From contig NW_026854123.1 of NCBI RefSeq assembly GCF_026571515.1, positions 186,001 to 250,000 on the forward strand: a stretch of 64,000 nucleotides of DNA, read 5' to 3'. This stretch comes from Ruditapes philippinarum. Lineage: Eukaryota. Below the pieces are notes generated by a model that ran no database searches, had not been told where the DNA came from, and saw only the letters and a program-made list of their open reading frames with translations. How positions within the stretch are numbered: position 1 is the first letter of the stretch; the number at the start of each line of letters is the position of its first letter. A program made the position numbers and the translations under genes. Positions 36,737 to 58,900 of this stretch are shown here, piece by piece.

Positions 36737-37142
36737 TACGGAAGCTTCAAAGGGTCACCTCTTACGCGATCTTTTATGAGAAGATTTACGCATGTCGAAA
36801 GAATTAAGGTGCAAAGGCATGATATCTTTAGTGTTTTCGCAAAAAATAATTCGAATAAACGAGAAGATTTGAGTTAATTGGCCAAATGTTTTCTTGCAAA
36901 AACAGAAACATTACACATAACGATTAATATTTTGACGAAAAATTAATAAAAGGTGTTTTTCGAAAAAAATGTAGAGGCAATACATGATGCATTTCACTTT
37001 CTCGAAAAAGATTATGACGGAATACCTCATTCATTTCACCTTCTCGCATTAACTTTTGTTGCATTACCATAATATATTTCATTTGATGAAAAAAGTTTGC
37101 GCAATGCCTAAAGAGTATTCCGCTTTTCGTTATAAATTTTTG
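36737..37142 (+). repeat. Left TIR of the large transposon
   Basis: Reverse complement of 56490-56893. I count 3 mismatches in the outer ~175 bp; the inner part is more diverged. Confidence 0.95.
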
Positions 37143-37228
37143 CATACGATGGCTTATTATTTCGTTAAATAAGTTTTAATAAAATTGTGATATTCAAGAC
37201 TACAGCAGGCAGCGTATTTGTGGAAGTC

Positions 37229-37252
37229 ATGGAGAAAGTTCTAACAGTATTG
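37229..37252 (+). CDS. Probable first coding exon of the transposase (MEKVLTVL)
   Basis: ATG at 37229 and donor TTG|gtatga at 37253. Phase 0 matches the acceptor ttactttcag|ATA at 40796, in frame with the transposase. Confidence 0.55.
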
Positions 37253-37511
37253 GTATGATATTATAATTTTTATCATCATCATTATTAGTAGTATTACAAT
37301 TAGTTGTAATAGGAGTTGTAGAAGTGGCGGTGCTGGCGGCGGTGGTTGTAGCAGCCCAGCAAGTATCAGTCTAAGTAGGTACATGTCGTAGTGCACGCTT
37401 TGTTAGATTCTCACACATTTGCCTTTTCATGATAGCTTATTTCATAGTAAGTGATTTACGGTTGCCATTCCCTACATCATTTTGCATTTTAATCCACGGA
37501 AACAATTTCTT

Positions 37512-38350
37512 AAACAGGAGCTGTCACTGAAGTGACTTATGCCCCCGATAGGAAGCTCTGGCATAAAATCCTCAATATATGACAAAATACTGGTTATATA
37601 CGCCCGACCTCCTTTGATAAATATCATTCCTATAATAGTCTAAACAATTTTCACTTAAATTCATCATTAAAGGCCCATAACTGTGCGAAAAAAAATCATG
37701 TACAAAATCATGGCACAATGCACAACTAGACTTGGCATGCAAACAACTTTATAAATGCTCACTGAAATTTTCCAAGCGGCAAAGTTAATTTACTGAAATC
37801 AGGAACTATTTACAACTACGCTTGGTGGCAAACAATTCTGTGAATAATCCCCCCCCCCCCTCTGTTTTGGTGATGAAGCGCGGACAAGGTTATTTTACTC
37901 AAAAAATTAACATTTAAGGGGCTATAACTGTCCCGAAATAGATTCAAGCGGAAAATCATGATACTATGCACAACTAGGCATAGTGACAAACAATCCTGTG
38001 ACGTTTCACTAAAATCACCCATCAGTTTATATGATGAAGCGCAGACAAGCTTATTTCACTCGACAAATTTCCGTTAAGGGGCTATCACTGTCCCAAAATA
38101 AGAATCAAGCTAAAAATCTAGATTATATGCACAATTAGGCATAGTGACAAACATTCCTGTGAAGTGTCACTGGAATCACCCATCAGTTTTCTTGATGAAG
38201 CACAGACAAGCTTATTTTACTCGAACAATGACCAGTAAGGGGCCATATCTATGTAAAAAAAGGATTCAAGAGGAAAATCAATAACGTATGCACAACTAGA
38301 CTTGGTGACAAACAATCCTGTGAAGTTTCACTGAAATCGCCCCATACAGC
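37512..38350. mobile_element. HINE/Helentron-type non-autonomous element with ~161-bp tandem repeats, nested in the transposase intron
   Basis: Starts aacaggagctgtcac...atgccccc. Repeats gcacaa.taggcatagtgacaaaca.tcctgtga recur at ~37968, ~38129 and ~38290. Confidence 0.6.
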
Positions 38351-38865
38351 GCGAACGACAAAATAACTATATAACTTCAATTTATTTGTTCATCCAGACT
38401 CGAAAGTATTCTTTAAATTACCTTAAAATTTATGTGGGCCCCCTCCCTAAAAAATGGTTTAAAATTATTGTAAGCATGCAATAACAGGATAAACACTTAC
38501 CAAACACAGCATTTTAGGAATCTTAATTAACCTTAGTATTTACTTCAGAAAAAGGGATGCATAATTATCAATATATATGATATTATTAAGAGTAAAATCA
38601 AAGTACTTAATATACTAGTTGTAGTGCGACTGGCAACAGTAACCAATGAAGTACTTAACAAAGCATATCTCTGTTTCATTATAAAGAATTTAATTGCCAG
38701 TGCAGTCATATTAAAGAAATTCCATATGGAGGTTTTGTCAAACGTGTTATTTGAGGTAAGTATTGAAAATAATACAAAATTCAATAAAAAAAAGTTATGT
38801 AATATCAACACTAATATGTTTACCTTTCAAGGTCCTACCGATATCAAGGTCAAATTTCATTATGT

Positions 38866-39260
38866 GTTAGCTCACCTACCACGTAACAAGATGAGATTTT
38901 GTGGTCAATTTTCCCGTCGTCCATCGTCCGTAAACAAAGTTGGCGTTAACGCTCTAGCGTTTTCATTTTTGCTTTGATCTTGACTAAACTTTGTCAGAAA
39001 GTGAATCTCAATGTAAGGTAGATCATTTTATACAATGGATTATGTCAGGTGAAGGTCAAGGTCACAGTGACTTTGAAAACAAAATCAACAAATTATGATA
39101 ATTTGTTATACATAATACTATGCTTGGAACAGTTTACCAAAATATGATAAAAAGAAATTTGCAAATGTAATAATATGAGTGAAATTTGGGTGCATTTATT
39201 TGAACCATACGAAAAATTGGAAATACCATATTGGCTGCAAATCTACCAACAGGCTTGTTA
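38866..39260. mobile_element. Degenerate HINE-type fragment
   Basis: Start ttagctcacct..., then a cgtcgtccatcgtccgt microsatellite and an aaggtcaaggtcacag motif. Confidence 0.45.
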
Positions 39261-39994
39261 TTGCTAAAACGCTTCTTGAGTGCAAATGTTTTGTTGTATG
39301 CAATTTTCTTCTCTTGTGAACATGTTGCAATTCACTAGAAAGTACAATAAAAATGCAGTATTGAAGAAATGAAAAGATACTTTTAAAACACGGCCGCCAT
39401 GAACCGGTTTCAAAAATATACTTCTACACAATGCCCAATGCCCACTCTGCCATTATACAGAAGAAAGGTAACATTTTTATTGCACACTACTTATTCACCA
39501 TACCTTACCCCTTGCGACTTTTTGTTCTTCCGAAATTAATAGAAATTAAATACTAATACAAATTGCTGGAAATAGTTCTATATGATACAAGACAGACACT
39601 AATCTTGGATCTGCCTACTAGTATACCTAAATTAGCGTACCGTGACGCATTCCGGACTTAAATCATACATTTCTAGTAAAGGGGAGTACTTCGAGGGAAT
39701 GACATAATGATATAACTGGTTACTAAAATATATTACATCCAGTTCCATAATAAGGAAATATTTTCGAATACTTCCTGTTACTCTGACTTTGATAACGAAC
39801 ATTGTTTTGAGTAAATATATTTATGGGTGGTACATGCATCGCATTCGATGTTCCAAACGGTTTAAAAAGTTGTGTTTAAGAAAGTTCATAGTGATGTGTG
39901 TTAACATTTACATAGTTGTTTGAAAGAGTCGATTGTTGTTGTTGTTTTAAACTCCCTAAAACACCCCGATAATTGGAAAAGTGCCATTCAACGT

Positions 39995-40335
39995 TGCAGT
40001 AGTATTGGTCCTAGTATTGCTAGCAGCAGAAGCAGCAGCATCAGCAGCAGCAGCAGCAGTAGTAGTAGTAAGAGCAGCAGTAGTAGAAGTAGTATAAGTA
40101 GCAGCAGCAGCAGTAGTAGTAGTAGGAGCAGCAGTAGTAGAAGTAGTATAAGTAGCAGCAGCAGTAGTAGTAATTGCCTAAGAAGTAAAAGTAGTATTAG
40201 TAGCAGTAGCAGTAGCAGCAGTAGTAGTAGTAGCTGAAGTAGTAAGAGTAGTTAAGTAGTAGAAGTAGTATTTATATAAATAGTCGTCTTAGTCTTATGC
40301 GTCGTCGTCGTAGTCATCGTTGTTGTCGTTAGTCG
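39995..40335. repeat. (AGC/AGT)n and (GTC)n compound microsatellite
   Basis: Visible directly; it explains the poly-Ser ORF 39920-40237. Confidence 0.9.
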
Positions 40336-40795
40336 TAATCTTTTATTTTACATATATTAATAGAAATAGATAATATTCTTTGCAAAAGTACTGAGAGACG
40401 CCTCCACATGAGCCAAAATATTTCAAGAAATTGAATCTTTGGAAAAATTTATTAAGATCTTTAAAAAGTAAGAAGATTTAATAGTTAAGTAATTATTTAC
40501 ATGTTATGAGCGTTTAATGACTGCTTTTGCAGTATTAATCACTAGTACTGCGTTAGTAACGCAGTAAGAGATTTTTATGTATATTTTGACCTCTTTTTTA
40601 TTATTAACGTGGATTGTACATGCCGTTTGCAATGTATAAATGACTTTCTTTGTTCATTTTACAATACTTTACTTTTAGATACATTTTTAAAAATTTCATA
40701 AAAATAAGCAAGAACCTGGAGGCATGTTGCTATTTAATGTTGTTGTATTCAGTGAAAAATTCTAATAATTTACTTTGCTATTTGATTACTTTCAG

Positions 40796-42034
40796 ATACT
40801 TCTTGTGGCAATTCATATCAAGTTGTCTTATGGTATGCTACGAGATGAGCTGAGCCTACACGATACTGTCCAAAAATACTTCAATCTTGGTTATACGCAT
40901 TCGGAAATGGCTGGAATGTTTTTGTTTGTTCACCATATTGTAGTTTCCAAAACTAAAATAAAAAGAATTCTTCGACGTTTAAACTTACGTAGACGTGAAG
41001 AAAGCAACCCAGAGGATATTGCTCGTGGAATAGTACAGCTACATCGAGAGGGGTATTCCGAACTAGGATACAGAGCAGCATGGAGAATGCTTTTTTTGAA
41101 ATATGGAATCAGAGCACATCAAAATACAGTGAGAATTTGTCTTAAGGCGTTAGACCCTTGTGGAGTAGTCAACAGGAAAGCAAGGCGATTAAGACGTAGA
41201 CAATATTTCAATCGAGGCCCAAACTTCGTAATTCATGTCGACGGATATGACAAACTAAAACCATTTGGAATATCAATTCATGGAGCTATAGATGGATTTT
41301 CCCGAAAAATTCTATGGTTGAAAGCTGCACCATCAAATAAAAACCCTGCTTTTATTGCATTTTATTTCATGCAACATGTCAAGAAACGTGGTCATGTCCC
41401 AAGAATGGTAAGGGTTGATGCAGGAACTGAAAACTGTACATTAGAGAACCTTCAGATCGCACTTAGAATGTCACATACTGATAGCATGTCAGGGTACAAT
41501 TCTGTTTCTGTTGGGAGATCAACTGCAAATCAAAGAATTGAAATGCTTTGGAGTTTCCTCTCGAGAAACTTTACTTGTTATTGGAAGAACTTCTTTAAAG
41601 ATTTGATTGATCAAAACCTATTTGATAATACCGATCAGTTGCATATCGAATGCCTCAGACTTTGTTTTATGCCTCTCATTCAAAATCATCTTGACTGTTT
41701 TAAGAAATCCTGGAATATACATACGATTCGGTCACAAACTTATTGCGAGACTGTAACAGGTAAACCCAACATGATGTATTATCAGCCAAGAATGTTTGGT
41801 TATACAGATTGTTCGTTTGCAATAAATTGTTCTGAAGAAGAATTGGATAATCTGGTGCGGGTGTATACCGAGGAACCACCTATCCATGGTTGTTGCAGCG
41901 AAATGTTGCAGTTGAGTGAAAATTGGATGGGGTTAAATTCACATTTCTTTCAACAACTGAACACTGCAGAACAAGCAAGCGATGTTTATCAAAACATACT
42001 ATCATCGCTTCATAGTCGATTACTACAGAATTAG
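40796..42034 (+). CDS. DDE transposase, integrase-core type (IS3/IS481-related, IS3EU-like); main exon
   Basis: Uninterrupted 419-codon ORF. HTH-like N-terminus (KYFNLGY...KRILRRLNLRRR; LGYRAAW). Motifs RRRQYFNRGPNFVIHVDGYDKLKPFGISIHGAIDGFSRKILWL, VRVDAGTEN, NQRIEMLW and WNIHTIR. Candidate triad D156/D215/E256 in ORF-track numbering. Splice acceptor at 40795; first internal ATG at 40835. Confidence 0.92.
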   Translation: MLLVAIHIKLSYGMLRDELSLHDTVQKYFNLGYTHSEMAGMFLFVHHIVVSKTKIKRILRRLNLRRREESNPEDIARGIVQLHREGYSELGYRAAWRMLFLKYGIRAHQNTVRICLKALDPCGVVNRKARRLRRRQYFNRGPNFVIHVDGYDKLKPFGISIHGAIDGFSRKILWLKAAPSNKNPAFIAFYFMQHVKKRGHVPRMVRVDAGTENCTLENLQIALRMSHTDSMSGYNSVSVGRSTANQRIEMLWSFLSRNFTCYWKNFFKDLIDQNLFDNTDQLHIECLRLCFMPLIQNHLDCFKKSWNIHTIRSQTYCETVTGKPNMMYYQPRMFGYTDCSFAINCSEEELDNLVRVYTEEPPIHGCCSEMLQLSENWMGLNSHFFQQLNTAEQASDVYQNILSSLHSRLLQN

Positions 42035-42249
42035 GTTTTTAGTGAGTGGGAAACATTTCATGGGGTATATGACAACGGCAGTAAATAGGCCACGTGGAGT
42101 TGTTCTTATTATGTCTGTATAATGCACATGCAAATACATGTATGTTTGATAATTGTTAAAATGTTATGGAATCGAAATGTATTAATTTCCTTAAAATGAT
42201 TTCATTTATGTACATATATCTGATAGTTTGTAAGGTAACGATAGATTAA

Positions 42250-42736
42250 GAATATCGACCTCAAAGTCAATAGGGGTCATATACTAATCATGACTTGCCT
42301 CCATGCCAAAAATGAAGACTGTGGGTCAAAGGAATCATAAGTTATTGGGCGAACAAGCTTTTTGAAGTCAAGGCCCCTGTGACCTTGACCTTTGACCTCA
42401 AAATCAATAGGGGTCCTCTACTTATCATGACTAACCTTCATGCCAAATATGACGACTGTAGGTCAAAAGAATCTTACGTTATTGGGCGGACAAGCTTTTT
42501 GAAGTCAAGGCCCCTGTGACCTTGATCTTTGACCTAGTGACCTCAAATCAATAGGGGTCATCTACTAATCATGACTAACCTCCATGCCAAATATGAAGAC
42601 TAAGGGTCAAAGGAATCTTAAGTTATTGGGCGGACAAGAAAAAACCGACGGACGGCCGTACGGAAGGACAGCCGAACTGACGGACAAGCTGATTCCAGTA
42701 TACCCCCCTTACAACTTTGTTGTGCGGGGCTATAAT
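42250..42736. mobile_element. HINE-type element with ~135-bp tandem repeats
   Basis: Repeats gaccttgacctttgacct...aatcaataggggtc, then a (gacg)n-like tract and terminal hairpin tatacccccctt...gcggggctataa. Confidence 0.65.
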
Positions 42737-42763
42737 GACAGAGTGATGGAATGATGGACCTGG

Positions 42764-43969
42764 TAAAATAGATAAATACAGAATCCCTAAAGAAAGCCCA
42801 ACACGGCAAAATTGAAAATGTTGCAGGCTCGGTTTGATTGAGCCTGTTCATGGACGGTACTGGAAAGTGCAAGTTACCGTCCACGCCCCCTAGCACCGGC
42901 TTAAGCAGAATTCAACATTTAAACGTGAAATAGTAAAATTTTGAATTTAGAAACATCCGCAGATGTGTTCATACGGCGGTTATCATGGAACCTTCAATGT
43001 GACACTTCCGTGCCATTCCATGAAAAGCGGCGTATGGTCCCCAAGTAATAAAAAGCGTGTGCCCTAAACGAGAAAACAATGGGCGGAACTAAATAAAATG
43101 GCAATTTTGAAAGGGGATCAGAGGTTATGAAGCCTGCGTATCACAGATAAGACGTCAAAAGACAAATTTAAAAAGCAGGCAACATATCCTAAGGGTGATT
43201 CAACATTATTCAAGTAGGAATATTGGAACCACCCAACTAGAAAATGCCGAAAAGTTGAAACTAAAAATACCACAAGCACAACAATAATGTCGTGCTGAAC
43301 GATCTTCAAGGATCGAAAATATAACATCATTGATTAAATGTACGGGGAGACTTTTTACAGCCGCCACACGGCACAAATAACACGGATGTGATCATAAAAT
43401 AGATAAATACAGAATCCCTAAAGAAAGCCCAACACGGCAAAATTGAAAATGTTGCAGGCTCGGTTTGATTGAGCCTGTTCATGGACGGTACTGGAAAGTG
43501 CAAGTTACCGTCCACGCCCCCTAGCACCGGCTTAAGCAGAATTCAACATTTAAACGTGAAATAGTAAAATTTTGAATTTAGAAACATCCGCAGATGTGTT
43601 CATACGGCGGTTATCATGGAACCTTCAATGTGACACTTCCGTGCCATTCCATGAAAAGCGGCGTATGGTCCCCAAGTAATAAAAAGCGTGTGCCCTAAAC
43701 GAGAAAACAATGGGCGGAACTAAATAAAATGGAATTTTGAAAGGGGATCAGAGGTTATGAAGCCTGCGTATCACAGATAAGACGTCAAAAAGACAAATTT
43801 AAAAAGCAGGCAACATATCCTAAGGGTGATTCAACATTATTCAAGTAGGAATATTGGAACCACCCAACTAGAAAATGCCGAAAAGTTGAAACTAAAAATA
43901 CCACAAGCACAACAATAATGTCGTGCTGAACGATCTTCAAGGATCGAAAATATAACATCATTGATTAAA
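42764..43969. repeat. Two near-identical tandem copies of an unclassified ~575-bp structured repeat (period ~631 bp)
   Basis: 42764-43338 matches 43395-43969. Further partial copies: 45381-45649 (+), 53335-53381 with 54723-54863 (-), and 57946-58015 with 58747-58815 (-). Confidence 0.9.
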
Positions 43970-44234
43970 CACTATTTGGCCCCGCAATTTATGGAGGGGG
44001 CATATAAATATTCTTTTGGGGTCTCAGTAGGTCCTACGCATAACCACTTCACCACAGAGCTATATCTCAATGCAGATGTTTTATTTGATTATTGTATCAT
44101 TATTTGTATGATATTTTGAAATAGTATGAGGATAATGATATACCAGATTTAGTAATGATGATAAATTGTGAACAAGAGCTGACAAATTTTGACAAATGCC
44201 CATGAAAAGGTTTCTTAAGCATGCAGGTATTATG

Positions 44235-45281
44235 AAACAAGAGGGCCATAATGGCCCTGAAATCACTCATCTGTAAATCGCGGGGCCAATTTTTACCCAG
44301 GAGCTTTTCTTTGGACAAACTTGGTAGACACCCATTTGAAGATGTTTCATGATAAATATCTAAGTTCTAGCTCTGAGAAGATTTTTTAAGTTTTAACTAT
44401 ACACATATAGGGAAAAACAATGAACCCCCCCCCCCTTTCTGGGCGGGCCAATTTTATCCCAAGGGCTTTTATTTGAAACAAACTTGGTAGACACTCACTA
44501 GAAGGTAATTCATGTTTAATATCTAAATTTTAGCTTTTCGGTTTTTTTACAGAAGATTTTTTAAGTTTTTAATATATACATAAAAGGAAAATCAATGATC
44601 CCTCTGGGCGGGTCCAATTTTAACCCCAGGGCCCTGATTTGAACAAAAATGGTAGACACCCATTAGAAGATGTTCCAAGCTAAATATCTAAGCTCTAGCT
44701 CTAAAGGTTTTTTTTTTTTTAAAAAAATTTTAAGTTTTACTATATACTTAAAGGGAAAAACAATGACCCCTGGGGCGGGGCCAATTTTGACCCCAGGGCT
44801 TTTATTTGAACAAACTTGGTAGCTAAGCTCTAGCTATTTGGTTTTTTTTTAAAGAAGATATTTTAATTTTTTACTATATAGTACATAAAGGCAAAAACAA
44901 TGATCCCCTGGGGCCAGACCAATAAGGAAAAGCAATGATCCCCTTGGCTTTTATCTGAACAAATTTGATAGAAATTCACTAGAAGATGTATCATGCCAAA
45001 TATCTAAGCCCCACATCTTTGGGTTTTTTTTAAAAGAAGATATTTTAAGATTTTTCTTTCAGTTGCCATGGCAACCAGAGTTCTGCATGGAATTTAATTC
45101 TTTGAACAATCTTTAAAGGTGACCACCAAAGGACTATTCCTGTGAAGTTTGGATGCAATTGGCTTAGTGGTTTATGAGGAGATGTTGTTTAAAGTAAAAG
45201 TTTACTGACGCCAGATCGACGGCCAGACGAAAAGTGATGACAAGAGCTAACCATGTCACTTTGTGACAGGTGAGCTAAAAA
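44235..45281. mobile_element. HINE/Helentron-type element with ~165-bp satellite-like tandem repeats
   Basis: Ends aaacaagagggccataatggccctgaaatcactcatctg and gtcactttgtgacaggtgagctaaaa. Internal units ggggccaattttgaccccagggc...gaacaaacttggtag. Confidence 0.75.
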
Positions 45282-45699
45282 TAAAGTATGAAAGTAAACA
45301 AAGGGTTAGTAAGAAATTAAGAAGTGCAGTGTATCGGTTCTTGTGCACTGCACTTCTTTAATGAGATCTATCATCCTATGAAATAGATGAAGACAGAATC
45401 CCTAAAGAAAGCCCAACACGGCAAAATTGAAAATGTTGCAGGCTCGGTTTGATTGAGCCTGTTCATGGACGGTACTGGAAAGTGCAAGTTACCGTCCACG
45501 CCCCCTAGCACCGGCCCAAGCAGAACCCAACATTTAAACGTGAAATAGTAAAATTTTGAATTTAGAACATCCGCAGATGTGTTCATACGGCGGTTATCAT
45601 GGAACCTTCAATGTGACACTTCCGTGCCATTCCATGAAAAGCGGCGTATGAAGTTGCAATTCAATAGATTTTTTAGTTGAAGAGAAATGGCCTGGACAA

Positions 45700-45930
45700 A
45701 ATTATTTGTTTGTTTGTTTCATTTTACGACTTTTCCCAACAGTCATTTCAGTCATATAGGCGGGAAGTTTCCTAACCATCGTACCTGGAGAGTTACACCA
45801 GTACTAGACTACCTTCCTCTGTGCAAAGCATCTCCCAGGGATCGCCAGAGAGGTAACTGGATAAGAAGTCATCGACTCTAACCCACAGTGACTGAGTTAT
45901 GATCCGGACAAGCATTAGGGAACGCCGCTG
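45700..45930 (-). mobile_element. SINE (mollusc Meta/MD-type-like)
   Basis: (ttgt)n tail followed by caacagtcatttcagtcatat...cctaacc...cctgg...accagtact. Confidence 0.5.
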
Positions 45931-46174
45931 ACACCGACAGCGACGCCACCGACAAAAGTTACCCCATTTTTTATGTTGCCTCTTCCAGATGACACACAAA
46001 GGTGTTGTGCAAGTTCCCAAAAATCTGTTACAGTCAATTATCATGTATCATGTAAATTGATATTGGCAAATATTTTGGGTATACTTGATGTCATGTAAAC
46101 AAATAACATTGTGTTGAACATTTTTCTCGGATGACTTAAATTGACAAAAGAATATAAATGAAAATAAAGCATAC

Positions 46175-49100
46175 CTTTACTTTAGAATACAAGTAGATTC
46201 TCAACTTCAACGTCATTTTATTCTCAGCGTATTTTGCTAAAGAAAATCCTTCTTTAGGTATTATCACATTATTCACTTTACCTAGCATGAAAAGCATGCA
46301 CGATTTTTTCCCCTTTCTGCTTCTTCCATCAGGAAAAAAGAAATCTGCAGCCATTTTTACAATTTCATCATATGATATATCTTTATGTAAAGCAGTGTCA
46401 AGAATGTTTTTAGGGTCCAATTTCGATGACCTCACTTGCTTGTATCGTTTTTCTTTTGCACTGAAATGCATCCATCCGATGCTAGTTCTAAATCGAATGC
46501 GCTGGGAATCAGTCTGAAAGAAATAAACTTATATACATACAAGAGACCTGCCATCAATGGCATTTTTGCAATTACAATGATGGTGTATTGTTTTTTGTTA
46601 TTTTGCGAATACACAATGTACATGTAAACAATTTTCCTTTAAATGTTAAACTTTTTTTATTAATTTTGCCAAATTTAATTTACAAATTTTTCGGGGTTGC
46701 GTCTAATCTCATTTAAATCAAACCTTAACACTTTCTCCAGTCCCTTTAACCCTTTTATCGCTCACTTGAATTTGCAGGCTCAATACCATTTAATTATGCT
46801 ATGTGATCTTGTTTTTGACCAGAAATGACCCATAATATTATTTTAACTTGACCCAAGAATCACTAAAACAACCTTTCTGACAATTAGCTTTCATGATATT
46901 TGATCAAAACAGTAACCTCAGAGTGTTAACAAAGTGCTTCCATGTTTGGACTGTGTGACCTAGTTGTTGACCTTAGGTGACCAATTATTCGAACTTGGCA
47001 AAGAAATCATGAAAAAAATCTTTCTGATCAATTTCCAGGATATTTGGATCAAAACAGTAACCTCTAGAGTGTTAGCAAGGTTTTTCATATTTGGGCTGTG
47101 TGACCTAGATCTTAACCCCAGATGATCCATATTCACACCTTACCTTGAAATCATTTTAACAACCTATTTTATAAAATTAAGAAAATAACAATTTTTAAAT
47201 ATAGCATTAACATGTTAAGTAACAAAGATGAAAATTTATAAAAAAATATAATGTAGGTGTTGATAATGAATGTTTATTTTGAATTTGAAGTAAATCCATA
47301 AAGAAATAAGAAAGTTAAAGAATGAATAAGAAAAAATCAAAGTTTAAGGAGGAGATAATTCTGGAAATATGGATTCTAGTTTCATAAACATTGTCATATT
47401 ATTATGATGTTGGAGTTTGAAGTAATTCCTATAAGAAAGTGAAAAATACAAATTTCTCAAAAGAATCTAAGTTCAAGGAGGATATAATTCTGGAAATAAT
47501 CTTGCCGAGTATTGAATCTTCTCACAAATGTTGAGAGATAATAACAATTTATTGAAATTGACACAAATATGAAGTTTGAAGTAGATACATTAAAAAGTAA
47601 ACAAGTTATTTAAAAAACAAAAACATTTTTGTCAAAAAAAATTTAAGTTCAAGGGAGGTAATTCTGATAATTTTTGTGCTAGAGTTGTAAACCTTATTAC
47701 ATATGATGTGGTTGATGACCGAAAACTTAAAGCTGGAAGTAAATACCTTAAAAATAAATAACTTATTGTGAAAAGGCATAAAAACTAGAATGAGAAATCT
47801 TGAAATTCAGTCTATTTGTTGCCATAGCAACAAAAATTTTCAACTAAAATACTAAAACTGATTTAAAAGTTCAACTTTATTTTAACTGCAAATTTCTTAA
47901 GTTCTTAAAAAGTAGGAATTGAAGATAAAAAGTAGGAATAAAGTAGGAAAAAGAAGGAACACTTGAAAAAGTAGGAGAAAGTAGGAAAAAGTAGGAACAA
48001 TTTGACAGCCTGAATTTTCATGAACTGCAGATCTGTAAAACCTTTTGAAAAGGCAATTTCTTCATTACCTCTCTATATACAATGTATAGTATACCAACAT
48101 TGGCGAAAACATTCAATTTTTATACAAACGCTTTTTGCAATTAATAATGCTTAAACAATTTCATTTGGGCAATAGTTTTGCATTCTAAGACCATGGAAAT
48201 TATGAGGCACACAGATATTTAAGTTTTGTTGCAGACAGACTGACATACACACAGGGCCCATCACTTTATTTAAACAAAACGAGTAATGACAATTATCATT
48301 GCAGATAAAAGTAACATTTGTTACATACTTACACATATTTAATTGTTTATAGTTAGAAATTTGCTGGTGTATTCAGTCAGTTTTGTCAAATAGTAAAACC
48401 CATATACATATATCACATTAATTGTCTAAAACTTATAATGTTGGAAAGAGATTATTAAGAATGAACTGAATTCATAGGTAACTTACCTTTTTCTTCTTCC
48501 ATTTGTTCGATTGGATTGATTCAACAAGTTTCATCATGTCGTTGTAATCTGCAAATACATGTAAATCAATTAATTGTAAAATGAAATACTATATTATGTT
48601 ATAACATAATATATATTATCACACACCCGTGCCGATTTTGCGACTCCGTAAATATGGTATTGCACGGCCGTGCATATATTTTGACGTGACGTCATTAGTG
48701 TTATGCAAACGTAGTGTAAAGACGCGCCTACTGTAGGCGCGTAAACGGAAAATGACTCTTATTTCACTTTAAACGGTCTTTATTTTGGGTATGTGATAAA
48801 TAGAATATTAAATTCGTGTAAGTTCATTACTGAATTTATTGCACTCGTTGAATAAAATGATATTATGCTCGCCAGAGGCTCGCATAATATAATTTTATTC
48901 AACTCGTGCAATAAATTCAGTATTGAACTTACACTCATTCAATATCCTCTATATATTAGATAACTATTGATTTAAGTCTTGTTACTTGTAAAGGTGGATC
49001 ATTGCATCTTATAAACTAAAACAGTATAAGGGGCCTTGATGACAAGAGTCTCTGCTTCCATGTGCATTAGAACTGAAGGCAGCAACAGCCAAAATAGTTT

Positions 49101-52100
49101 CTGTAGTACTCAAACAAATGAAACAGACAGAAACATTTTTACTGTTTGTTTTTTTTTTGTTTGTTTGTTTGTTGTTTTTCTTTGTTTTTTTTCATATGGA
49201 TTAGGGACTTTTGAACACTTTTTCTTCCATCTTAAAGGGGAGTATTTTCCAAACCATTGTTCCTTTGAAGAACCAGTACAAGATTCAAGCTATCAACAAC
49301 TAACAAACAAGGCATCTCCTGGAGATCAAACATATTGAAGTGTATGCTCAAAAACCAATTAACTGATCATGAAAAGCCTAAAAGGTATCAAATCTTTATA
49401 GCAAGTTGGTTACTCATAGAAAGTGTGAAGTTTATATAAATAAGTTGATTTTATAAATATATCAATGCAAAATAAAACACAAAAAGTTCAACAATAAAAA
49501 AATAATTTAAGTAAAAAAGTTTAAGAATTTTTTTTATAAATTTTATTAACAAAATTGTAGTGATGATTTAAATCAAAAAGTTATTTTTATAACTTCCCTT
49601 TATTATATAACAGATTGTCCCTTAAAGAAAGTTTAAGATTTCATTTTTCATTTATACCATGGTGGATGTTGTGTTTTAGTCAACTGGATACAGAACTATG
49701 TTATTTCAGACTGTCAAAATTAGGTATTTTGAGGATCCAGTCTTAATATTTTTTCAAAATAAGAAAACAATACTTTGCTCACAATTAACTCCAACATCAG
49801 TTATCTCCCTTAACATTTATTTATTGCAGAAAAGTCTTTGGTACAACAGTTTAATTTTGACAGGAATTTTGTGGCAAAATACTATGTCTTTCTAGCGATG
49901 AGATATGTACTACGTCTATTATGGATAGAGAACCTGAATTTACTAATCTAAAAAAAATGTTGATTTTTTTCTTTTTTCATAAAGAAAAATTGCCTATCAT
50001 AACAAAATATAAATTCCTTCAAAAAGTCCTCTTCTTATACAGTGTAAATTGACTCAAAAGACATAAAGATTACCTTCTTCTTTTGGTTTTTCATTTCCTC
50101 TATCTGCACTATTATCATCCGAACTTCCACCTAAAATAAATGATAAATTAATTTTATGATAATTATTATGGTCATTTAGCAATATTATTTGAATATGCAG
50201 ACAGACATCTTCTGCTTTCAGGTCAGAAAGTCTGATTATTCATAGAAACAAACGCTTTAGTAGACCTTTGCAGCATGATCAAGTGGTGAATGCTTTTAAC
50301 TTGTAAGCATTTGATTGTGGTTCAAACTTCTGCCATTGGAATCCATTGTTTCTTTCACCAAGAAACTTTTTCGCTGCTAAGTACTGCTTGGTACCAGGAG
50401 CAGACCTAAGTATCTTTTAATAAGTAGTACAGCTTTCTACACAATCAAGCTAAAGCAAATTAGTATAAACTAAAATCATTTAAATAGAACCTAGGTGTAA
50501 GCTATACATTAGTACATGTATTGAGGTATCATTTCAGTTATGATACACAAAAATGCTGACCATGCTTAAAAATAAGTTTTTTTTGTTTGTTTGTTTTAGG
50601 TTTTATTTCACATTGACACAGTATTGGTCATATCGCCACGTTCCAGCTTTACTGGTGGAGGAAGACCTCAGGTGCCCTTCTGTGCATTATTTCAGACACA
50701 AACGGGCACCTGAGTAGAACCACCGACGTAAGCTAGCTGGATACTTCCTCACATGAAAGAATCCAAAAAAATAAGTGGAAGAGCTTCAAAGACTCTGATA
50801 ATTGTGTTTGACTCACTCTGCTCATTAACTTATGATAGTGAACATGAAGAATTCCCTTTTAGAGGTATATTAAACATATGACCTGAACAACCAAAATGAG
50901 CCCTATTTTAAATAGACGTGGTCTTTCCCTTGAAGCTAAGGTCAGGAAGATGCTGCTCTTTTAAGAGTTTCATAAAAGATAAACTGATCATCATATGGCA
51001 TAAAGGGGTGTATTTAATGTACAGTCAGTCATGTAAAAACAGAAATATTTTAACAAGAGCAGTTTGTTAAACCATGTGCTTGACTGTTCTCAGTTATTAA
51101 TACTTAATTATTTAAGTGAGCAGGCTACATACTAAGTGCTTGTCATAGAAAAAAAATCAAGTCACACTTTTAAATGTTTCAAATTTCCAAAAGACTTAAA
51201 ACAATGAACATGAACATGAAATATAATGGAAATCCATATAACTATTGGATATGTTCAAGAGGAGATAACCTGGCATTAACATTATTCAAGGGCTATGGCA
51301 TCAAGGGACAATAGATTAAACTAAAACCTGAATTTGAATAATTCACAGTTTGTATTTTGCATCAATTTTTCAAAAATCAAAGCAACAAGTGAAAGAGCTG
51401 TTGAAAGAAATCTTAAGTTAAAAATCAAGGGCCAAATTTAATCAAATTTACATTTGCAGAATTATCCTGCATTTCATCTTCAACTGTATTTTTAGTATTA
51501 AATGCATAACTGTTACTATTTGCCATATGCACATTATCTCATTTTAGTACTAAATAATTTGAACAATCAAAAATTTTGAAACTAAAAACAATACAACTAT
51601 GCACCAAACAGATTCTCTAAGTACCTACCTGTGAATTGTGCAGTCCACCTTTCTTCTCCACATAGTACCATAAGTGTGGTATTTGGCTCTAAGGAATCAA
51701 AATAGTCTGCCTCTACTTCTACTCCATCGGAGTTTAGCATAAGTTTAATTTCCGTTTCAGGACGAATATTTAACTTTTGTCGACCTGCAAAAATATATAT
51801 CAAGTATAGTTTCATTATTTGCTCCTGATATATATATCAGGAACATCATGAATATATATCATGTATATCATAATAAATATAAAACAAGAGGGCCATGATG
51901 TTACTTAATTGCTCCCAAGAAACAATTGTTTTTCAGTGATATAATTTTTCCAATAAATTTGTAGAAAGACAAGTCCAGCTCAACTTCAACTTGTGTCTCT
52001 AGTTAAAAAGTTTCCCGACACTGATTGTTTTTTCTTTATAGTAAAAATGATATGAACCAAGTTTGGTGATCATCCATTCATAAATTTGTGATAAAATTGG

Positions 52101-55100
52101 CCTATGACTGTGCTTCGAAAATGCAATCTTTCTATTTTTTTAGTTATCTAAAAAATTAGATAATAACACAATCTCAGTATTTAGATAACCATGTATACTG
52201 TTTGTCAGGATGACACCACCAGTCAATATTTATTTAAGATAACATAGGTATACTAGTCAACTCAACAAGAAAGATAGTTTCAGGTTGAATTATCTTACTC
52301 TCTTATAGAAACATGAAAAAAAATTGTAACTTAACTATGTGCATAGAGGGAAAAAAAAGCAAAAGATTGTTTTGATGAAATGTATTCAGTAAACAAGATA
52401 ACTCTTTTAATAAAACTATACATACAGGGTTGAAAAGTGATATTGTATGAAACAGTTCAAAATTACTTTGAACAAGTGATAACCAAGTTTACAAAATGTG
52501 ATTCTGAATAAAAATAATTGAAACTGATACTAGAATAGCACAAAGAATTAAAAATTAAAAATACATAAAGACAAGCAAGAAAAGCTTCTGAAGTTGACCA
52601 CAATTTTCAATGTAAAGATCATTGTGACCCTGACCTTTGACTTTATGACCCTAAAATAAATAGGGGTCCTGTATTGGTCTCGCCTGTTCATCCTATAAAA
52701 TTTTACAGCTATAGGTTGATATATACTTAAGTTAATGAGCAGAAACCATTTTACATTTTAAATGTAATAGTGACCTTTACCTTTGACCTTGTGACCCCAA
52801 AATCAATAGGGGTCTCCTTCCCAATATGGACAATCATCCTATGAAGTTTGAATATTGTGGGCCAAATGGAACTTAAGTTATGCTCTGATACTGTTTTTAG
52901 TTTTAAGGTATCAGTGACCTTGACCTTTGACCATATGACCTAAAAATTAACATGGGTCTTCTACCCAATATGGACAATCATCCTAGGAAGTTTAAATATT
53001 CTGGGCCAAATGGAAGTAAACATATGCTCCTGAAACTGATTTCAGTTTTATGGTAATAGTGACCTTGACCTTTAACCTTGTGACCCCAAAATCAATAGGG
53101 GTCTTCTACCCAATATGGAAAATCATGCGGCTATATCCTGGATTAGACCCCGGGGTCTAAACCAGGAGTATATATAAGGTTCATTCCGTTTTCTTTAGTG
53201 TATTATATACACGTTTTAGACCTGAAAAATACATAGGAGATTGCCAATCATGCTATGAAGTTTAGATATCATGGGCCAGATGGAACTTAAGTTATGCTCC
53301 GGAAACTGTTTTCAGTTTTAAGGTGATAGTGACCTTTCTTGTTGGGTAGTTCCAATATAATACTATTCCTCACTTGAATACCATAGGAACTCGAGAACGG
53401 GACCGTAGATTGCGGCGCATATTTTAGATCGTGTAACGGTTTTTAAAAACGTTTCTGCTACATCTAAATATCTTTAAGTATTATCCGAGCATATGGCCTC
53501 AAACAATATATTATCACTTGAACCCAATCTGTTACTTTTAAAACTGGTCAAATTTTACGGTATTATAAAATAAAGTTTCCTTTTAAAAGGAAAGGCTTGC
53601 ACAGTTGTGCCTTCATAAAGTGTTTATTTAGTTTTTTTTTTTTTGTAAAAACGAATATTTTTTGTCAAAACAATTTGAAATCTATTCTCTATTGTATAAA
53701 ACTTGTAAAGAAAATAATCAATCATAAAAATACTAACTATTCTATCATTCTGAAAAGGAAACAAGTGTGAACATTTCATTTCCAGAGAAATCATTCGTTT
53801 TGGCAGTTTCTAATTTCATTTATATAGCATCTTTATGGACAAGTAAATGCACTAAAATACTTCGTTACGTGGTACCAATTAATAAGCATGTATCAACTAT
53901 GTTACACAACCACAGATACGGTAAGGTTAATGATATGCATGGGCTATTTTTAGATTACCTCACTGCGTTCATTAGATCTAAATATAAGTTGATCATGCAC
54001 TAATATTCTCTGTGATTTGGTAAGCAAGACCACCCTTTGGAGACGTAACCATCCTCTATTGTATAAGGTATATATGTTAATTAATATACAAAACTAATAC
54101 AGACAAAAACAATTATAAAAGAAACTAACTTTTGCGTCTTGAAAAAGAATTGAAACGTAACAATTTCGTTTATAATTTATTACGGTTTAAACCGATAAAT
54201 CAAGTAAAAATAGAAATCCTATTTATATAAACAAACTGGGATTACCGAAGTAACTAAAATAGCTTAGATTTCCGTAATATTACTTCGTCTGATTCCGCAG
54301 TATGACAGATTCGCCCGAATTGTCACGATTGCAATCGGAACTTCATCGGCTATAATCATTAAACCGAAGAGTGACGGAAAGGGCCAAAAAGTTGTGATTG
54401 GCACGATTGCAGTTGGTTTCTCGTTCAATCATGCACTAACAAATGTAAGCAGGAAACCACCTAACCGGAACAAGTTTTCCAAAACAAATGGGCTTTGTCA
54501 AATGGCGGATGTCACTCCTTTTCTTTTTTCAATATACCGTAAATTTGACTGATTTTTAAATTAGCAGACTATATTAAATTGAGATAAGATAATTAAAGAC
54601 CATCCGCTCGTATAATATAAAAAGATATTCAAAGGTCGGACAAACAATATGTAAAGCTGGTACGGATTCGGATTTATGCGCCGCAATATGCAGTCCTGTT
54701 CCAGAGTTCCTATGTTGAATACTGTTAAATCACCCTTAGGATATGAAGCCTGCTTTTTAAATTTGTCTTTTGAAGTTATATGTGATATGCAGGCTTCATA
54801 ACCTCAGATCCCCTTTCAAAATTCCATTTTATTTAGTTCCGCCTATTGTTTTCTCGTTAAGGGATTCTTATTTCACTCCAAACTCCTCACAGCGGTTACG
54901 TCACGCTTTGCTACTTTAACCACTGCCACCACTGAAATCACGTGATGATAGTTGTATCATGTGACAAAAACATGGCGGCCAGTTTCAGAACGCCAAGGAT
55001 CCCATATCAAACTGGCAGATTTATAATTACATCCTTACCAGACAAAATAAGTTCAAGACACACAATTTGTTATCACTTTAAAACAAGTGCCGGATCAAAT

Positions 55101-55929
55101 CTTTTTGTGCAATCGTTCAATAACTGTTTATATTCTGCCATTGTTTACTGGTTGTTACTATGCATACGGTGTCACAGTGAAAATATCTTTCGTTATGTTT
55201 TCAAAATAATTTTTATACGTATAATTTTTTACTTTCTTGTACATTAAGCATAACTATTTAACGAAAGAAAACTAAAATGATATAAAGTATTCTATTTTAA
55301 AATTAAAAGTGAAAAAAATATATCCGACTATATTCGACCGAATTTACTTGTGGTGGCAGTGGTTACTGTACAGATCAGGGGAAGTAACCGCTGCGAGGAG
55401 TTTGATTTCACTCTATTTGATCTTTGACCTTGTGACCCCAAAATCAATAGGGGTCATATACCCAATATGGACAATCATCCTATGAAGTTTGAATTGGAAC
55501 TTAAGTTATGTTCCGGAAACCAAATTGCTAACAGACAGACGGACGGACGCTAGGGGGTAAAACATAATATGCCCGAAATTGTTTGGGGCATATAAAAACA
55601 TTTTTAACTTATAGTTAACTTATAGTATATTTTAAAAAGGGTGTCATAATTTATAAAACATTTTTGGTTTAGAAGGTTTTTGCTATCAATCTTATCTGGT
55701 CATACTTTTTCATCTCGGGTCCAATACTCGTGTCTGTGGTCCTCACCGGCCTGTGCCATATACAAAAATATCAGATAAACAGATACAGTAAAGGGAAAGA
55801 TAATGCATGTTATAATGTGAACTTACATTTTGCAATGAGATCTTCAAAACTAGTCACAATCACCCCTTTTCTTACATTTCTTGTTACATTGAAAAGTTTC
55901 AACGGAAGTTTCTGTTTTTCGTTTTCCAT
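46175..55929 (-). CDS. Multi-exon gene: CIDE-N domain fused to a transposon-associated accessory domain (>=239 aa)
   Basis: Exons 55929-55827, 51784-51629, 50130-50074, 48548-48487 and 46513-46175 all have GT-AG boundaries and compatible phases (1,1,1,0). Product: MENEKQKLPLKLFNVTRNVRKGVIVTSFEDLIAKCRQKLNIRPETEIKLMLNSDGVEVEADYFDSLEPNTTLMVLCGEERW (CIDE-N), then a linker, then RFRTSIGWMHFSAKEKRYKQVR...AADFFFPDGRSRKG...LRIYLYSK. Possible ATG-only upstream exon at 56445-56443. The 3' end is uncertain (candidate last exon 46024-45971, or read-through to the stop at 46136). Confidence 0.85.
46800..47830. repeat. Degenerate HINE/satellite-like tandem repeats (intronic)
   Basis: Recurrent gatcaaaacagtaacctc.agagtgtta and aagttcaaggaggatataattctg units. 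Confidence 0.5.
47908..48012. repeat. (AAAGTAGGA)-type short tandem repeat, possibly a MITE subterminal array
   Basis: About seven aaagtagga-like units ending at gacagcctg. Confidence 0.6.
48612..48955. mobile_element. Foldback element (possibly Crypton-like), intronic
   Basis: Long hairpin gtgtaagttcattactgaatttattgcac...ctcgccagaggctcg...gtgcaataaattcagtattgaacttacac (48800-48955). Inverted pair ttatcacacaccc / gggtatgtgataa. Confidence 0.6.
50280..50475 (+). mobile_element. Degenerate tRNA-derived SINE
   Basis: A-box-like aagtgg and B-box-like ggttcaaac, then caagaaacttt...agtactgcttggtaccagga and tail aattagtataaactaaa. Confidence 0.5.
50585..50765 (-). mobile_element. Truncated SINE
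   Basis: (ttgt)n tail, then ttccagctttactggtggaggaagacctcaggtgccc...gggcacctgag (hairpin). Related to 13590-13735. Confidence 0.55.
53382..54714. mobile_element. Non-autonomous TIR element, P-element-like
   Basis: TIRs cataggaactc...attgcggcgcata / tatgcgccgcaat...gagttcctatg. Perfect 8-bp TSD TTGAATAC at 53374-53381 and 54715-54722. Confidence 0.8.
54879..55404. mobile_element. MITE with 9-bp TSD (Mutator-like)
   Basis: TIRs caaactcctcacagcggttac / gtaaccgctgcgaggagtttg. TSD ATTTCACTC at 54870-54878 and 55405-55413. Inner inverted pair taaccactgccaccac / gtggtggcagtggtta. Confidence 0.8.
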
Positions 55930-56489
55930 GCCGGCACACTGAAACTGAAATAAAAAATGGAGTAACGGAATATAAGGGAAGTAACTGTACATATTACAAA
56001 CTTCATTCTCATCTTTCCATATACTGTACTGTATAGCCGATTTGGTTCATTCAAAAAATTATTTATTTATTTAGATCTATTTATTACTTTTTTATTTATG
56101 AATTTATACGTAAAAGGGTCGAAAGAGAAAAGATTGATAAATTTGGATCTTTCAAACAGAACATTACTTCCAGGTATTCCAAATGAAAAGCAATTTATTC
56201 GCATCAACAGAAATTCAGAGTTCCTTGGATCGTGGACCCTTCGGGATTTCTAAAGCCTTGCAACAGAATGTCTACAGTTTTATCAGCAAATGATAGTACC
56301 AAATGCATGGATATGTGAAAAAAATTGACCGACTGACATGATGCATATTTCTATCAAAATGATTCCCTATTCAGAAAATAAGCCTAATTATGAAAGCATA
56401 TCATGCATTTGTAAACAGTTTAGCAAAAACAGGAGAACTTACCATTTTTTCTTCTCGAATGGCCTCGTGTCCAAAAATGACGATCTCGA

Positions 56490-56893
56490 CAAAAATATAA
56501 CGAAAAGCGGAATATACTTTAGGCATTGCGCAAACATTTTTTCATCAAACGATATGTATGAGGGTAATGCATCAAAAGTTTTTGCGAGAAGGTGTAATGT
56601 ATAAGTTATTGCGTCAATTTTTTTTGAGAAAGTGAAATGTAGCATGTATTGCGTCTACATTTTTTTCGAAAAAACACATTTTTTTAATTTCTCGCAAAAA
56701 ATTTACTCGTAATGTGCAATGTTTCTGTTTTTGCAAGAAAACATTTGGCCAATTAACTCAAATCTTCTGGTTTATTCGAATTATTTTTTGCGAAAACACT
56801 AAAAATATCATGCCTTTGCACCTTAATTCTTTCGACTTGCGTAAATCTTCTCATAAAAGATCGCGTAAGAGGTGACCCTTTGAAGCTTCCGTA
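56490..56893 (-). repeat. Right TIR of the large transposon
   Basis: Reverse complement of 36737-37142; ends gaagcttccgta. Confidence 0.95.
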
Positions 56894-58900
56894 ACTGATT
56901 ACTTGTGTCATCATAAAAACGAATAAGATATACATGAAATAAGCAGACATTTCTAAGGCGCAATTTAAGCAGAATAACAGAAAGCGAAAAACGTCTTAAA
57001 TTTTAACTTATTTGTCATTGCTAACACATTCTTTTCTAAAGAACTTATGCATGGAATTCCAGCTTTTGTTTATTTCATATGGCTGCACTGACACAGTTTA
57101 ATAAAGGATACTTTAGATATTAATTACGTATGACATGTTTAAGCAATCTTTATTAAAGTTTGTGTGCTATGCGAGATAAACGAGAATAAAAATTAAAACA
57201 TGAACTATTAATGGAAACCATTATCAGCATGAAATTGCTTTACATATTCGTTCATTTGTTGATAACAATGTATTGTCAGTGCATTAACATTCTTGTTATA
57301 CGTAATACACATCTAAGGAATCATCTATAAAACTGTCGTGCCATTTTATTTCTATTTTATGAACGCTACGGTTAAGCTTGTTCGCATATCTTTCTTAACA
57401 ATCGTTTTATTTATCCTTTGATCTTTTTCATGGATCGCACGTCTTTCTCGCTATATGCTTTAGCATTTGATACACGTATTAAGCCAGCATCAGTGTGCTT
57501 TTTTTAATCGAAATAGGATGTTGCGCTGCTAATTTTGAAGGAGTCATTTGAAATTAAAATACTACTAAATTTTAAGATTACAAAATGTCAGGAATAACAC
57601 AAGAATACTCGTAGTGATAACGAACACAATTATTTTATTGAATTCACTCTTTATCTAGTATTTCTACAATTATGTTGCATATTTTGTGCTTAATAAAAAA
57701 ATAAGAAAACAATGTGTTAATCGTTTCATTTAATTCCTAGATGTAGATAAACTATACGCGTATATATCAAAATCTGGAAAAAAAGTGATCCAACTTGTTT
57801 TTTATTGTGGCAAATAATTCGTATTAATTTCCTGAAAATTGTTTTATTATCCTATTTGTGTCATGTAGGAAAGTTTGGTTGAGTCTTTATAATTGTGTTG
57901 CTGATAATTCTTTGGTTATTAAACCTTAAATTTTAATTCACATGTACGAACACATCTGTGGATGTTTCTAAATTCAAACTATTACCTTTTTTATGTTTTA
58001 ATGTTGAATTTTCCTTATGAGGTAAATAAAGGCAGGATGCGACACTTTGGAAACGTTCGAGTAGTGTCGTGAATTTCCTTTTAATTTTATTTTATAATCC
58101 AAGACATTGGAAAAAAGAACACATTTCTTTTTTGAATATTAATTTATTTTATAGCACAACAAGTTTTAATCCATTTAAACTATTTTATATAATAATCACA
58201 AATATAATCCAATTATTTTATTCAACAACCTTTATTAACAAAACAGCCTTACTAATGTTATTTCACCCACATTTTCCTTATAAAAAGTCCCTATATATAT
58301 ATAGCAAAACATTCCCGCCTTTACGATTCAGCATGGTAAGAAAAACATGAAAACATTAATATCTCGTGCACAATAATACACCGTCGGGGAACTAAAACAA
58401 TAGAACTTTAAAGGCATGGTGATATATGATGTAACTTTACTAAGAAAATGGTTCTTGATAAAAAATAGTAGTATATTAAGATACATGTATATCGCAATAT
58501 CTGCGACAAGAAGCTTCTTGAAAATTGGCATGTGAAAAGTTGACCATATATCAAATTGTATTTCGTTGATTTTATTCCCATAGTGTTAGCTATTTTGATT
58601 ACACATGACGTCAAAATGGTCCACCGAAGCCCGTTTTAGATTTTGACATCGTTGCGTATCATTGGCAACTTTTACGGGTATCACAACGCCATACGTGGAC
58701 AAATATCATACATTCTACAGTATTTGTCGGAAATTATTTCTTGAAGAGGCTCAATCAAACCAAACCTGCAAATATTTTCTATTTGGACGTTTTGGGCTTT
58801 CTTTATGGATTTTGTTTTTTTACCCTTTTTAGGGTACTACCACTTTAATGGGCACTATACATGTAAGGAACTGAAAAATTGTCAACTTACGTCAGATATT

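Follow-up and report, generated by a model that had tools for sequence, protein, structure and literature searches.

A CIDE-N and ubiquitin-like gene as the probable second gene of an IS3EU/GingerRoot-type transposon in the clam Ruditapes philippinarum

Introduction

Several groups of transposons keep a separate second gene beside the transposase across diverged families, examples being the Myb-like ORF2 of PIF/Harbinger, TnpA of CACTA and MURB of MuDR, and the products of these partner genes are either DNA-binding or of unknown fold. IS3EU/GingerRoot elements of animals are described as carrying only a transposase, and a second gene, encoding an alpha-kinase or a TET/JBP protein, has been recorded only in fungi. 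Here we analyze a 64,000-nt stretch of the genome of the Manila clam Ruditapes philippinarum (contig NW_026854123.1, positions 186,001 to 250,000; hereafter the window), which is AT-rich eukaryotic DNA of ~30% GC. The window contains a five-exon gene that is probably the accessory second gene of an IS3EU/GingerRoot element. Its product combines a CIDE-N domain with a predicted ubiquitin-like (UBL) domain, the latter being a putative docking part whose flanking modules appear to be swappable. The clam gene resembles the PIF/Harbinger, CACTA and MuDR partners as a separate second gene kept beside the transposase, whereas its product consists of interaction domains of the ubiquitin superfold, to which relatives add an E3 or kinase effector.

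CIDE-N is a module for head-to-tail homotypic interaction and polymerisation. The clam protein shares a full-length CIDE-N domain, by profile and by fold, with DFF45/ICAD, DFF40/CAD, CIDE-A/B/C and DREP1-4. It differs from the DFF/CIDE proteins in having no nuclease, DFF-C or CIDE-C domain, in its fusion to a UBL domain and in being encoded, as we argue here, by a transposon. In the searchable literature, we found nothing that links IS3EU/GingerRoot to ubiquitin-like, HECT, RING or CIDE-N genes, and nothing on CIDE-N-RING proteins in bivalves. The gene itself is annotated, as uncharacterized; what is new here is a previously undescribed class of accessory genes of IS3EU transposons.

Results and discussion

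The enclosing transposon

Judged from its sequence, the 20.2-kb unit at 36737-56893 is an IS3EU/GingerRoot-type cut-and-paste element with two convergent genes (Table 1). The terminal inverted repeats (TIRs) total ~400 nt, of which 233 nt are 93% identical between the arms. These outer 233 nt occur in at least 44 genome copies at 90-100% identity, which share the same start base of TACGG and have unrelated flanks outside it; the TACGG and CCGTA ends read alike in more than 30 copies. Among the three copies with both ends for which the target site duplication (TSD) could be checked, a perfect 6-bp duplication (CTCAAC) flanks the copy in C13959, and the flanking 6-mers agree at five of six positions in the window copy and in that of C2101. 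The transposase open reading frame (ORF) matches Pfam rva_4 (PF24764, E 8.6e-34) and, weakly, the NCBIfam models of IS481 (9e-7) and IS3 (1.6e-5). All of 42 homologs have the residues D156, D215 and E256 in common with it. Pfam detects no zinc-finger domain in the ORF, of which the genome has at least 15 copies at 94-100% identity. The published hallmarks of IS3EU/GingerRoot are TAYGG..CCRTA ends, a 6-bp TSD and TIRs of more than 30 bp (PMC12730594; PMC10045372). Since the ends, TSD and TIR length of the unit correspond to these, we assign it to IS3EU/GingerRoot, with which it also shares a DDE transposase that is integrase-like and has no HHCC finger. It differs from the described elements in its ~400-bp TIRs, its 20-kb size and its second gene encoding CIDE-N and UBL domains.

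Pairing of UBL genes with the transposase

The pairing of the two genes extends well beyond the window. Using a profile of the UBL domain only, we detected 67 loci in the clam genome. For 27 of them, an rva_4 transposase is present at a distance of at most 35 kb, where 0.5 would be expected by chance, and 26 of the 27 are convergent with it, typically at a distance of 4-5 kb. The pairing was counted against 144 rva_4 places from the listed matches, with 150 of 742 transposase candidates scored, so that 27 of 67 is a lower bound. The suggestion of the earlier note on this DNA that the second domain belongs to proteins encoded beside this type of transposase is therefore borne out. Metagenomic DNA gives a similar picture: 80 contigs encode a related transposase, 18 of them with at least 3 kb of downstream sequence, and in five of these 18 the opposite strand encodes an ORF with a UBL domain, in a convergent layout. 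The UBL gene is a regular companion of the IS3EU-type transposase in clams and in other animals.

Two diverged elements in the clam genome have CIDE-N and UBL exons in the same convergent layout. In C8738, the transposase is 45% identical to that of the window, the CIDE-N exon 44% and the UBL exon 33%; in C1065, the corresponding values are 42%, 36% and 26%. The transposase in C8738 (219000-238999) has one internal TAA.

These observations bear on the question of whether the gene could be an ordinary host gene that came to lie between two independent, opposite-facing repeat insertions and near an unrelated transposase. RefSeq treats it as a normal gene (LOC132739013), homologs are annotated in Mytilus and Ostrea, and the 6-mers flanking the unit agree at just five of six positions. 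However, the pattern of left and right arms recurs in other full copies (the right arm being ~94% identical to the left-arm query), the sequence from the right TIR through 35 nt of the coding sequence (CDS) is itself part of the repeated element, and 26 convergent layouts among 27 co-located loci, with only 0.5 co-locations expected, do not fit a chance neighbourhood. We therefore regard a host gene caught between repeats as highly improbable.

Membership of the gene in the element

Sister copies match the window copy only at 36737-42258 and at 55895-56893, the second stretch being common to them at 86-93% identity. At least six of them share another middle part of ~5.3 kb and are without the gene (L039 in C13959, L041 in C2101, L036, L037, L040 and the copy in C3853, together termed M-type). 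This is the commonest form of the family: the 13.6-kb region of the accessory gene is replaced by an unrelated, apparently non-coding ~5.3-kb part, which contains a tandem array of ~200-bp units. The transposase frame is open in several of these copies. In the C3853 copy, the left 5.5 kb is 97.5% identical to the window copy, with the gene absent. The gene thus occurs only once within the young family; exons 2 and 5 are each single-copy in the genome, and no intronless copy of the gene was found in the assembly. The right breakpoint of the M-type sisters falls 35 nt inside the CDS, which leaves them the start codon and the first 11 codons. An independent internal-deletion copy in C6137 retains exon 1 in full, together with the donor and 53 nt of the intron; its exon 1 has two substitutions, both synonymous. 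As both deletion forms retain the start of the CDS, at least two derivative lineages descend from the gene-bearing form.

This history is difficult to reconcile with passenger capture, in which one copy would have picked up all or part of a host CIDE-N/UBL gene that has no role in the transposon. Capture of gene fragments by GingerRoot elements is on record, in Pack-type elements of Selaginella (PMC6839031), and would suit a single gene-bearing copy in a young family whose gene-less copies have multiplied. The missing RING exon of the window copy and a CIDE-N intron position shared with a likely host gene, both described below, also agree with it. On the other hand, the gene is older than both of the independent deletion derivatives, transposases that are only 42-45% identical have this gene beside them in an unchanged orientation, UBL genes are paired with the transposase genome-wide and in metagenome contigs, and allele differences are mostly synonymous. 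On balance, we consider passenger capture improbable, though less so than a host gene between repeats.

Gene model, splicing and annotation

The earlier note had described the gene as a hidden one of five exons. The exon coordinates were right: every exon is bordered by AG/GT splice sites, read directly from the sequence, with compatible phases (1, 1, 1, 0), and the five exons add up to 717 nt, which a script-based frame check found to be in frame and free of stops. The gene is real but not hidden, since it is already annotated in RefSeq as the "uncharacterized" R. philippinarum gene LOC132739013. Two RefSeq isoforms, X2 (XP_060582635.1) and X3, have junctions identical to those of our exon model, intron 1 included. 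In isoform X2, the start codon is an in-frame ATG farther upstream (55992) and exon 3 is left out, whereas isoform X3 contains it; both pass through the donor at 46175 to the stop listed in Table 1. We searched the exons one by one and carried out full-length analyses on the database proteins (isoforms X2 and X3).

Reads and Logan contigs were aligned to positions 46100-52099 of the window. In Logan contigs of runs X1 and X2, which are only guessed to be RNA, introns 2, 3 and 4 are spanned by exact CT..AC joints, corresponding to GT..AG on the minus strand, and contig depth is 18-51 on exons and 5-10 on introns. Junction evidence called for by the earlier note thus exists for introns 2-4 in transcript contigs, and for intron 1 in the RefSeq isoforms only. 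A 1558-nt transcript contig holds 355 nt upstream of exon 5, made up of exons 4, 3 and 2 and a further 80 nt, which fits the expectation for exon 1. On the other side, it continues for 864 nt beyond 46175, so that this donor is used and at least one more 3' exon exists. We could not place any such exon past 46175 by tblastn with all family proteins, tblastx against the paralogs, the RING hidden Markov model (HMM) or the kinase ORF query; the tblastx comparison of the window with the paralogs matched non-coding repeats only. In exons 2 and 5, the transcript allele differs from the assembly at nine nucleotides but in only two amino acids, a hint, from small numbers, of purifying selection on the gene. 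The gene model, splicing and expression of the clam gene are established by these observations.

CIDE-N domain

That the N-terminal part of the protein is a CIDE-N domain, as had been read from the residue pattern, is confirmed by the Pfam HMM. XP_060582635.1 matches CIDE-N (PF02017) with 74.9 bits (E 5.2e-21) over profile positions 3-76 of 76, compared with a gathering cut-off of 23.5 bits. Taken singly, exon 1 gives 21.1 bits (E 3.2e-4) and exon 2 gives 46.3 bits (E 4.5e-12). CIDE-N is the sole Pfam match on the protein, and the absence of a recognisable CAD nuclease, DFF-C or CIDE-C domain also holds by Pfam, on the exons and on XP_060582635.1 alike. The AlphaFold2 model of the full-length protein (pTM 0.48) has two distinct beta-grasp domains, with a helix and a disordered, basic linker between them. 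Of these, the N-terminal one can be superposed on the CIDE domain of DREP2 (4d2k) with a TM-score of 0.85 and a root-mean-square deviation (rmsd) of 1.5 A over 76 columns at 41% identity, and also on DREP3 (TM 0.84) and FSP27 (TM 0.79). A basic RK motif and an acidic DG.E.E..F stretch are both present in the clam sequence; we take these to be the two CIDE-N interaction faces, a role that is predicted for the clam protein.

The best other CIDE-N loci in the genome, in contigs C2779 (158892-158978 and 169588-169734) and C2468 (3610-4530), are probably host genes of the DFF/CIDE type. The CIDE-N of C2779 has an intron at profile position ~29/30, the same position as in the transposon gene, which suggests that the CIDE-N domain of the transposon entered as genomic DNA, together with its intron.

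Linker and UBL domain

Between the two domains, the model of XP_060582635.1 has a helix at 109-120, in the exon 4 region, followed by a basic cluster. The cluster reads KWKKKK in the window gene and KNKRRK in the paralog in C8738, where an exon-4-like peptide is also found. Its conservation and its likeness to a nuclear localization signal (NLS) suggest nuclear import.

The exon-5 domain belongs to no Pfam family and to no named cluster of the ESM Atlas, where it matched only unnamed mollusc clusters, and a search of 1.84 billion representatives returned 98 clusters of relatives. AlphaFold2, given 50 relatives as the alignment, modelled the domain with a pLDDT of 93.5. In two fold searches with this model, the listed matches were almost all UBL-type beta-grasp domains. 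The best VIA-align match was the ULD/RAWUL domain of PCGF (Z 9.6, rmsd 2.0 A over 79 residues), followed by ATG5 (Z 9.1), the RAWUL domain of Ring1B (Z 8.6) and ATG12 (Z 8.2), with rmsd values of 2.0-2.8 A over 79-90 residues for these four. Because Z values of 8-10 are only moderately above the fold-search background of 7-8, we claim the fold class and not kinship with RAWUL. On the predicted structure, exon 5 encodes a previously unnamed ubiquitin-like beta-grasp domain. The search that had been proposed for the C-terminal domain has thus resolved its fold, which the earlier note had missed. A sequence-profile search of the PDB gave only a weak match to FAF1, outside the UBL part.

The RAWUL domains of PCGF and RING1B and the UBLs of ATG5 and ATG12 are non-conjugated protein-docking modules. 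They resemble exon 5 in fold, whereas sequence identity is 6-11%, with no detectable similarity, and in the RAWUL proteins of PRC1 the order of UBL and RING is reversed relative to the clam-family proteins. A fold in common with RAWUL and ATG5 does not demonstrate a common function. The UBL domain ends in ..LYSKVK at a conserved phase-0 intron, its homologs end in ..LTK.K, and a C-terminal Gly-Gly is absent from it; for these reasons, we consider it a built-in domain rather than a conjugatable modifier. A complex predicted for the UBL domain and the transposase ORF scored 0.25 (mark 0.34), a value that speaks neither for nor against binding.

Modules around the UBL domain

Among 50 members of the UBL family, the partner domains were HECT in seven, RING in three, CIDE-N in two and SAM in one, and so the SAM-like and HECT-like parts named in the earlier note for the relatives are indeed there. 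The Clytia protein P0059 has the architecture SAM-UBL-HECT, the Hydractinia and Astyanax proteins are UBL-HECT, and those of Ostrea and Mytilus are (CIDE-N)-UBL-RING. The Mytilus and Ostrea homologs (for example XP_076106716.1, VDI59898.1 and XP_056009384.1) resemble the clam protein in layout, with CIDE-N, a basic-cluster linker and UBL at 39-51% identity per exon. They are encoded by annotated genes at multiple loci, termed "uncharacterized" or "DFFA-like", and end in a C3HC4 RING, which the window copy lacks. One Mytilus homolog was automatically named "DNA fragmentation factor 45 kD alpha subunit", a misleading name because only CIDE-N is in common.

In the C8738 paralog, a RING exon (L042 4828-5109, minus strand; E 4e-13) lies between the UBL exon and the transposase. 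Its CIDE-N-UBL-RING gene probably shows what the window copy has lost. Two further clam loci encode UBL in the N-terminal part and a Ser/Thr protein kinase in the C-terminal part of a single ORF, of 773 aa in C7309 (139700-143300; L047 571-2892, minus strand) and of 1057 aa in C12824 (300000-304000; L048 628-3801, plus strand). Each converges on an rva_4 transposase at a distance of 5-11 kb. In fungal IS3EU elements, an alpha-kinase gene has been described in the opposite orientation to the transposase (PMC12730594), and the clam UBL-kinase companion looks like a parallel to it. After exon 5, no kinase or other conserved coding exon was detected in the window, so the window copy is either effector-less or has its effector within one or more unplaced 3' exons.

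Taken at the level of sequence, modules are swapped around a constant UBL domain: CIDE-N and RING in bivalves, SAM and HECT in cnidarians and fish, and a kinase in the clam. The earlier proposal that CIDE-N is a swapped-in polymerisation module is consistent with, but not proven by, the SAM domain that occupies the corresponding N-terminal position in Clytia P0059.

In the companion ORFs of three metagenome contigs (L052, L064 and L117), a stretch ~130-150 residues past the UBL domain weakly resembles UBX (E 1.5e-4 to 4e-3), and the UBL family profile has a weak FAF1 match in the PDB. The HECT-type companions may therefore contain a second ubiquitin-like domain of the p97-binding type.

Weighing the evidence and a possible mechanism

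Several observations weigh against an accessory role for the gene. It is present in only this copy of the young family, and the gene-less copies have multiplied. It follows that the protein either works in trans or is not required for the chemistry of transposition; an element can do without the gene in cis, and may do without it altogether. No RING exon was found in the 64-kb window by an HMM built from 11 homolog RINGs (best E 0.34), a result on which the unmapped 3' exon or exons cast a small doubt, and the window copy may be a decaying remnant that has lost this exon. In the raw RNA-seq runs X23 and X24, exon depth over 46100-52099 is 0-2x and junctions were not found, so that expression is low or restricted, and the RNA nature of the two runs with the splice joints is a guess. 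Lastly, 40 of the 67 UBL loci are without a nearby transposase match among the scored candidates. Even so, the joint reading of the convergent pairing, the retained CDS start and the constant UBL domain leaves us fairly confident that the gene is the accessory second gene of an IS3EU/GingerRoot element.

The gene is transcribed inward from the right end of the element, converging on the DDE transposase, and its product is a tandem beta-grasp protein composed of CIDE-N, a short helix, a basic NLS-like cluster and UBL. In an accessory role, the UBL domain would be the constant docking part, which may bind the transposase complex or a fixed partner in the host ubiquitin system. The N-terminal domain, CIDE-N in bivalves and SAM in cnidarians, would serve for self-association or as a hook onto host proteins with the same domain, and a C-terminal RING, HECT or protein kinase effector would modify the target. 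Since no effector exon is detectable in the window copy, its protein would serve as an adaptor or polymer in the nucleus, either by itself or in assemblies formed through CIDE-N with RING-bearing paralogs or with host DFF40/DFF45.

A more specific form of the accessory role is that of a cell-death decoy, which the earlier note had also raised. Here, CIDE-N would pair with host DFF40/CAD or DFF45/ICAD and blunt the apoptotic DNA fragmentation that follows transposition breaks, and RING relatives would direct ubiquitination of DFF. The CIDE-N match across the full profile, a fold very close to the CIDE domain of DREP2, the RK and DG.E.E..F motifs of the two putative interaction faces, the RING E3 added in bivalve relatives and the other, likely host, CIDE-N genes of the clam all agree with such a target. 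Yet pairing with CAD/ICAD is a prediction from sequence and fold, the window copy is without an effector domain, and other companions bear SAM or a kinase, so that a CAD-specific role cannot be the general function of the family. We regard the decoy, along with its proposed effects on fragmentation and on DFF, as unlikely, if somewhat less so than passenger capture. A broader version is similarly doubtful: that IS3EU/GingerRoot elements across Metazoa carry a protein for counter-defence or host manipulation made of a UBL dock, a self-polymerising CIDE-N or SAM hook and an E3 or kinase effector. In it, the hook would co-assemble with CAD/ICAD or with SAM-polymer silencers, which the effector would then modify, a step to which we likewise give only a small chance. 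If true, this would be the first transposon to use a cell-death domain to disarm the host machinery of DNA fragmentation.

Feature positions and intronic repeats

The features of the element are collected in Table 1.

Table 1. Positions of the transposon and of its two genes in the 64-kb window.
Feature	Position	Strand	Description
Left TSD candidate	36731-36736	.	ACTGAA; 5/6 match to right ACTGAT
Left TIR	36737-37139	plus	Starts TACGG
DDE transposase ORF	40775-42034	plus	419 aa, stop-free, integrase-like
Stretch between convergent genes	42258-46135	.	Nested repeats; absent from sister copies; may hold 3' exon(s)
Read-through tail	46136-46174	minus	RefSeq isoforms: 12 codons + stop 46136-46138; intronic in spliced transcript contig
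Exon 5	46513-46175	minus	113 aa; predicted ubiquitin-like beta-grasp domain (UBL)
Exon 4	48548-48487	minus	Short helix + basic KWKKKK cluster; contig joints 46513/48487, 48548/50074
Exon 3	50130-50074	minus	Linker, acidic/Ser-rich; alternative (skipped in some isoforms)
Exon 2	51784-51629	minus	CIDE-N part 2 (profile 31-76); contig joint 50130/51629
Exon 1	55929-55827	minus	ATG at 55929, donor gtaagt; CIDE-N part 1 (profile 3-28)
Subterminal region 5' of gene	55930-56490	minus	Common to sister copies; presumed promoter + 5' UTR
Right TIR	56491-56893	minus	Ends CCGTA
Right TSD candidate	56894-56899	.	ACTGAT

Between the convergent genes, a repeat of ~250-480 bp is present in three copies (42763-43247, 43395-43878 and 45381-45650), and several sister copies of the element have this repeat at a different site, near 39106-39115. 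Within the introns of the gene, the stretches 48616-48952, 50500-50900 and 47500-47900 reach 40-250x in the raw RNA-seq data and thousands in the contigs, with sharp loose ends; they are abundant transcribed repeats. One of these intronic repeats contains a near-perfect palindrome (48796-48873 / 48877-48954), and a tRNA scan of the intronic repeats detected none. The stop-free stretch at 48622-48768, considered as a candidate for exon 4, was rejected, being part of an abundant repeat and lacking both splice sites and a Pfam match.

Conclusion

If confirmed, the gene described here would be a conserved accessory gene of animal transposons, and its UBL domain would define a new domain family. 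Hundreds of multi-copy HECT, RING and CIDE-N proteins of bivalves, cnidarians and fish that are at present "uncharacterized" would then be transposon genes. For genome annotation, the finding is a warning that mollusc genes named "DFFA-like" may be transposon cargo. It would also open a testable question, namely the use of host ubiquitin or cell-death machinery by a cut-and-paste transposon.

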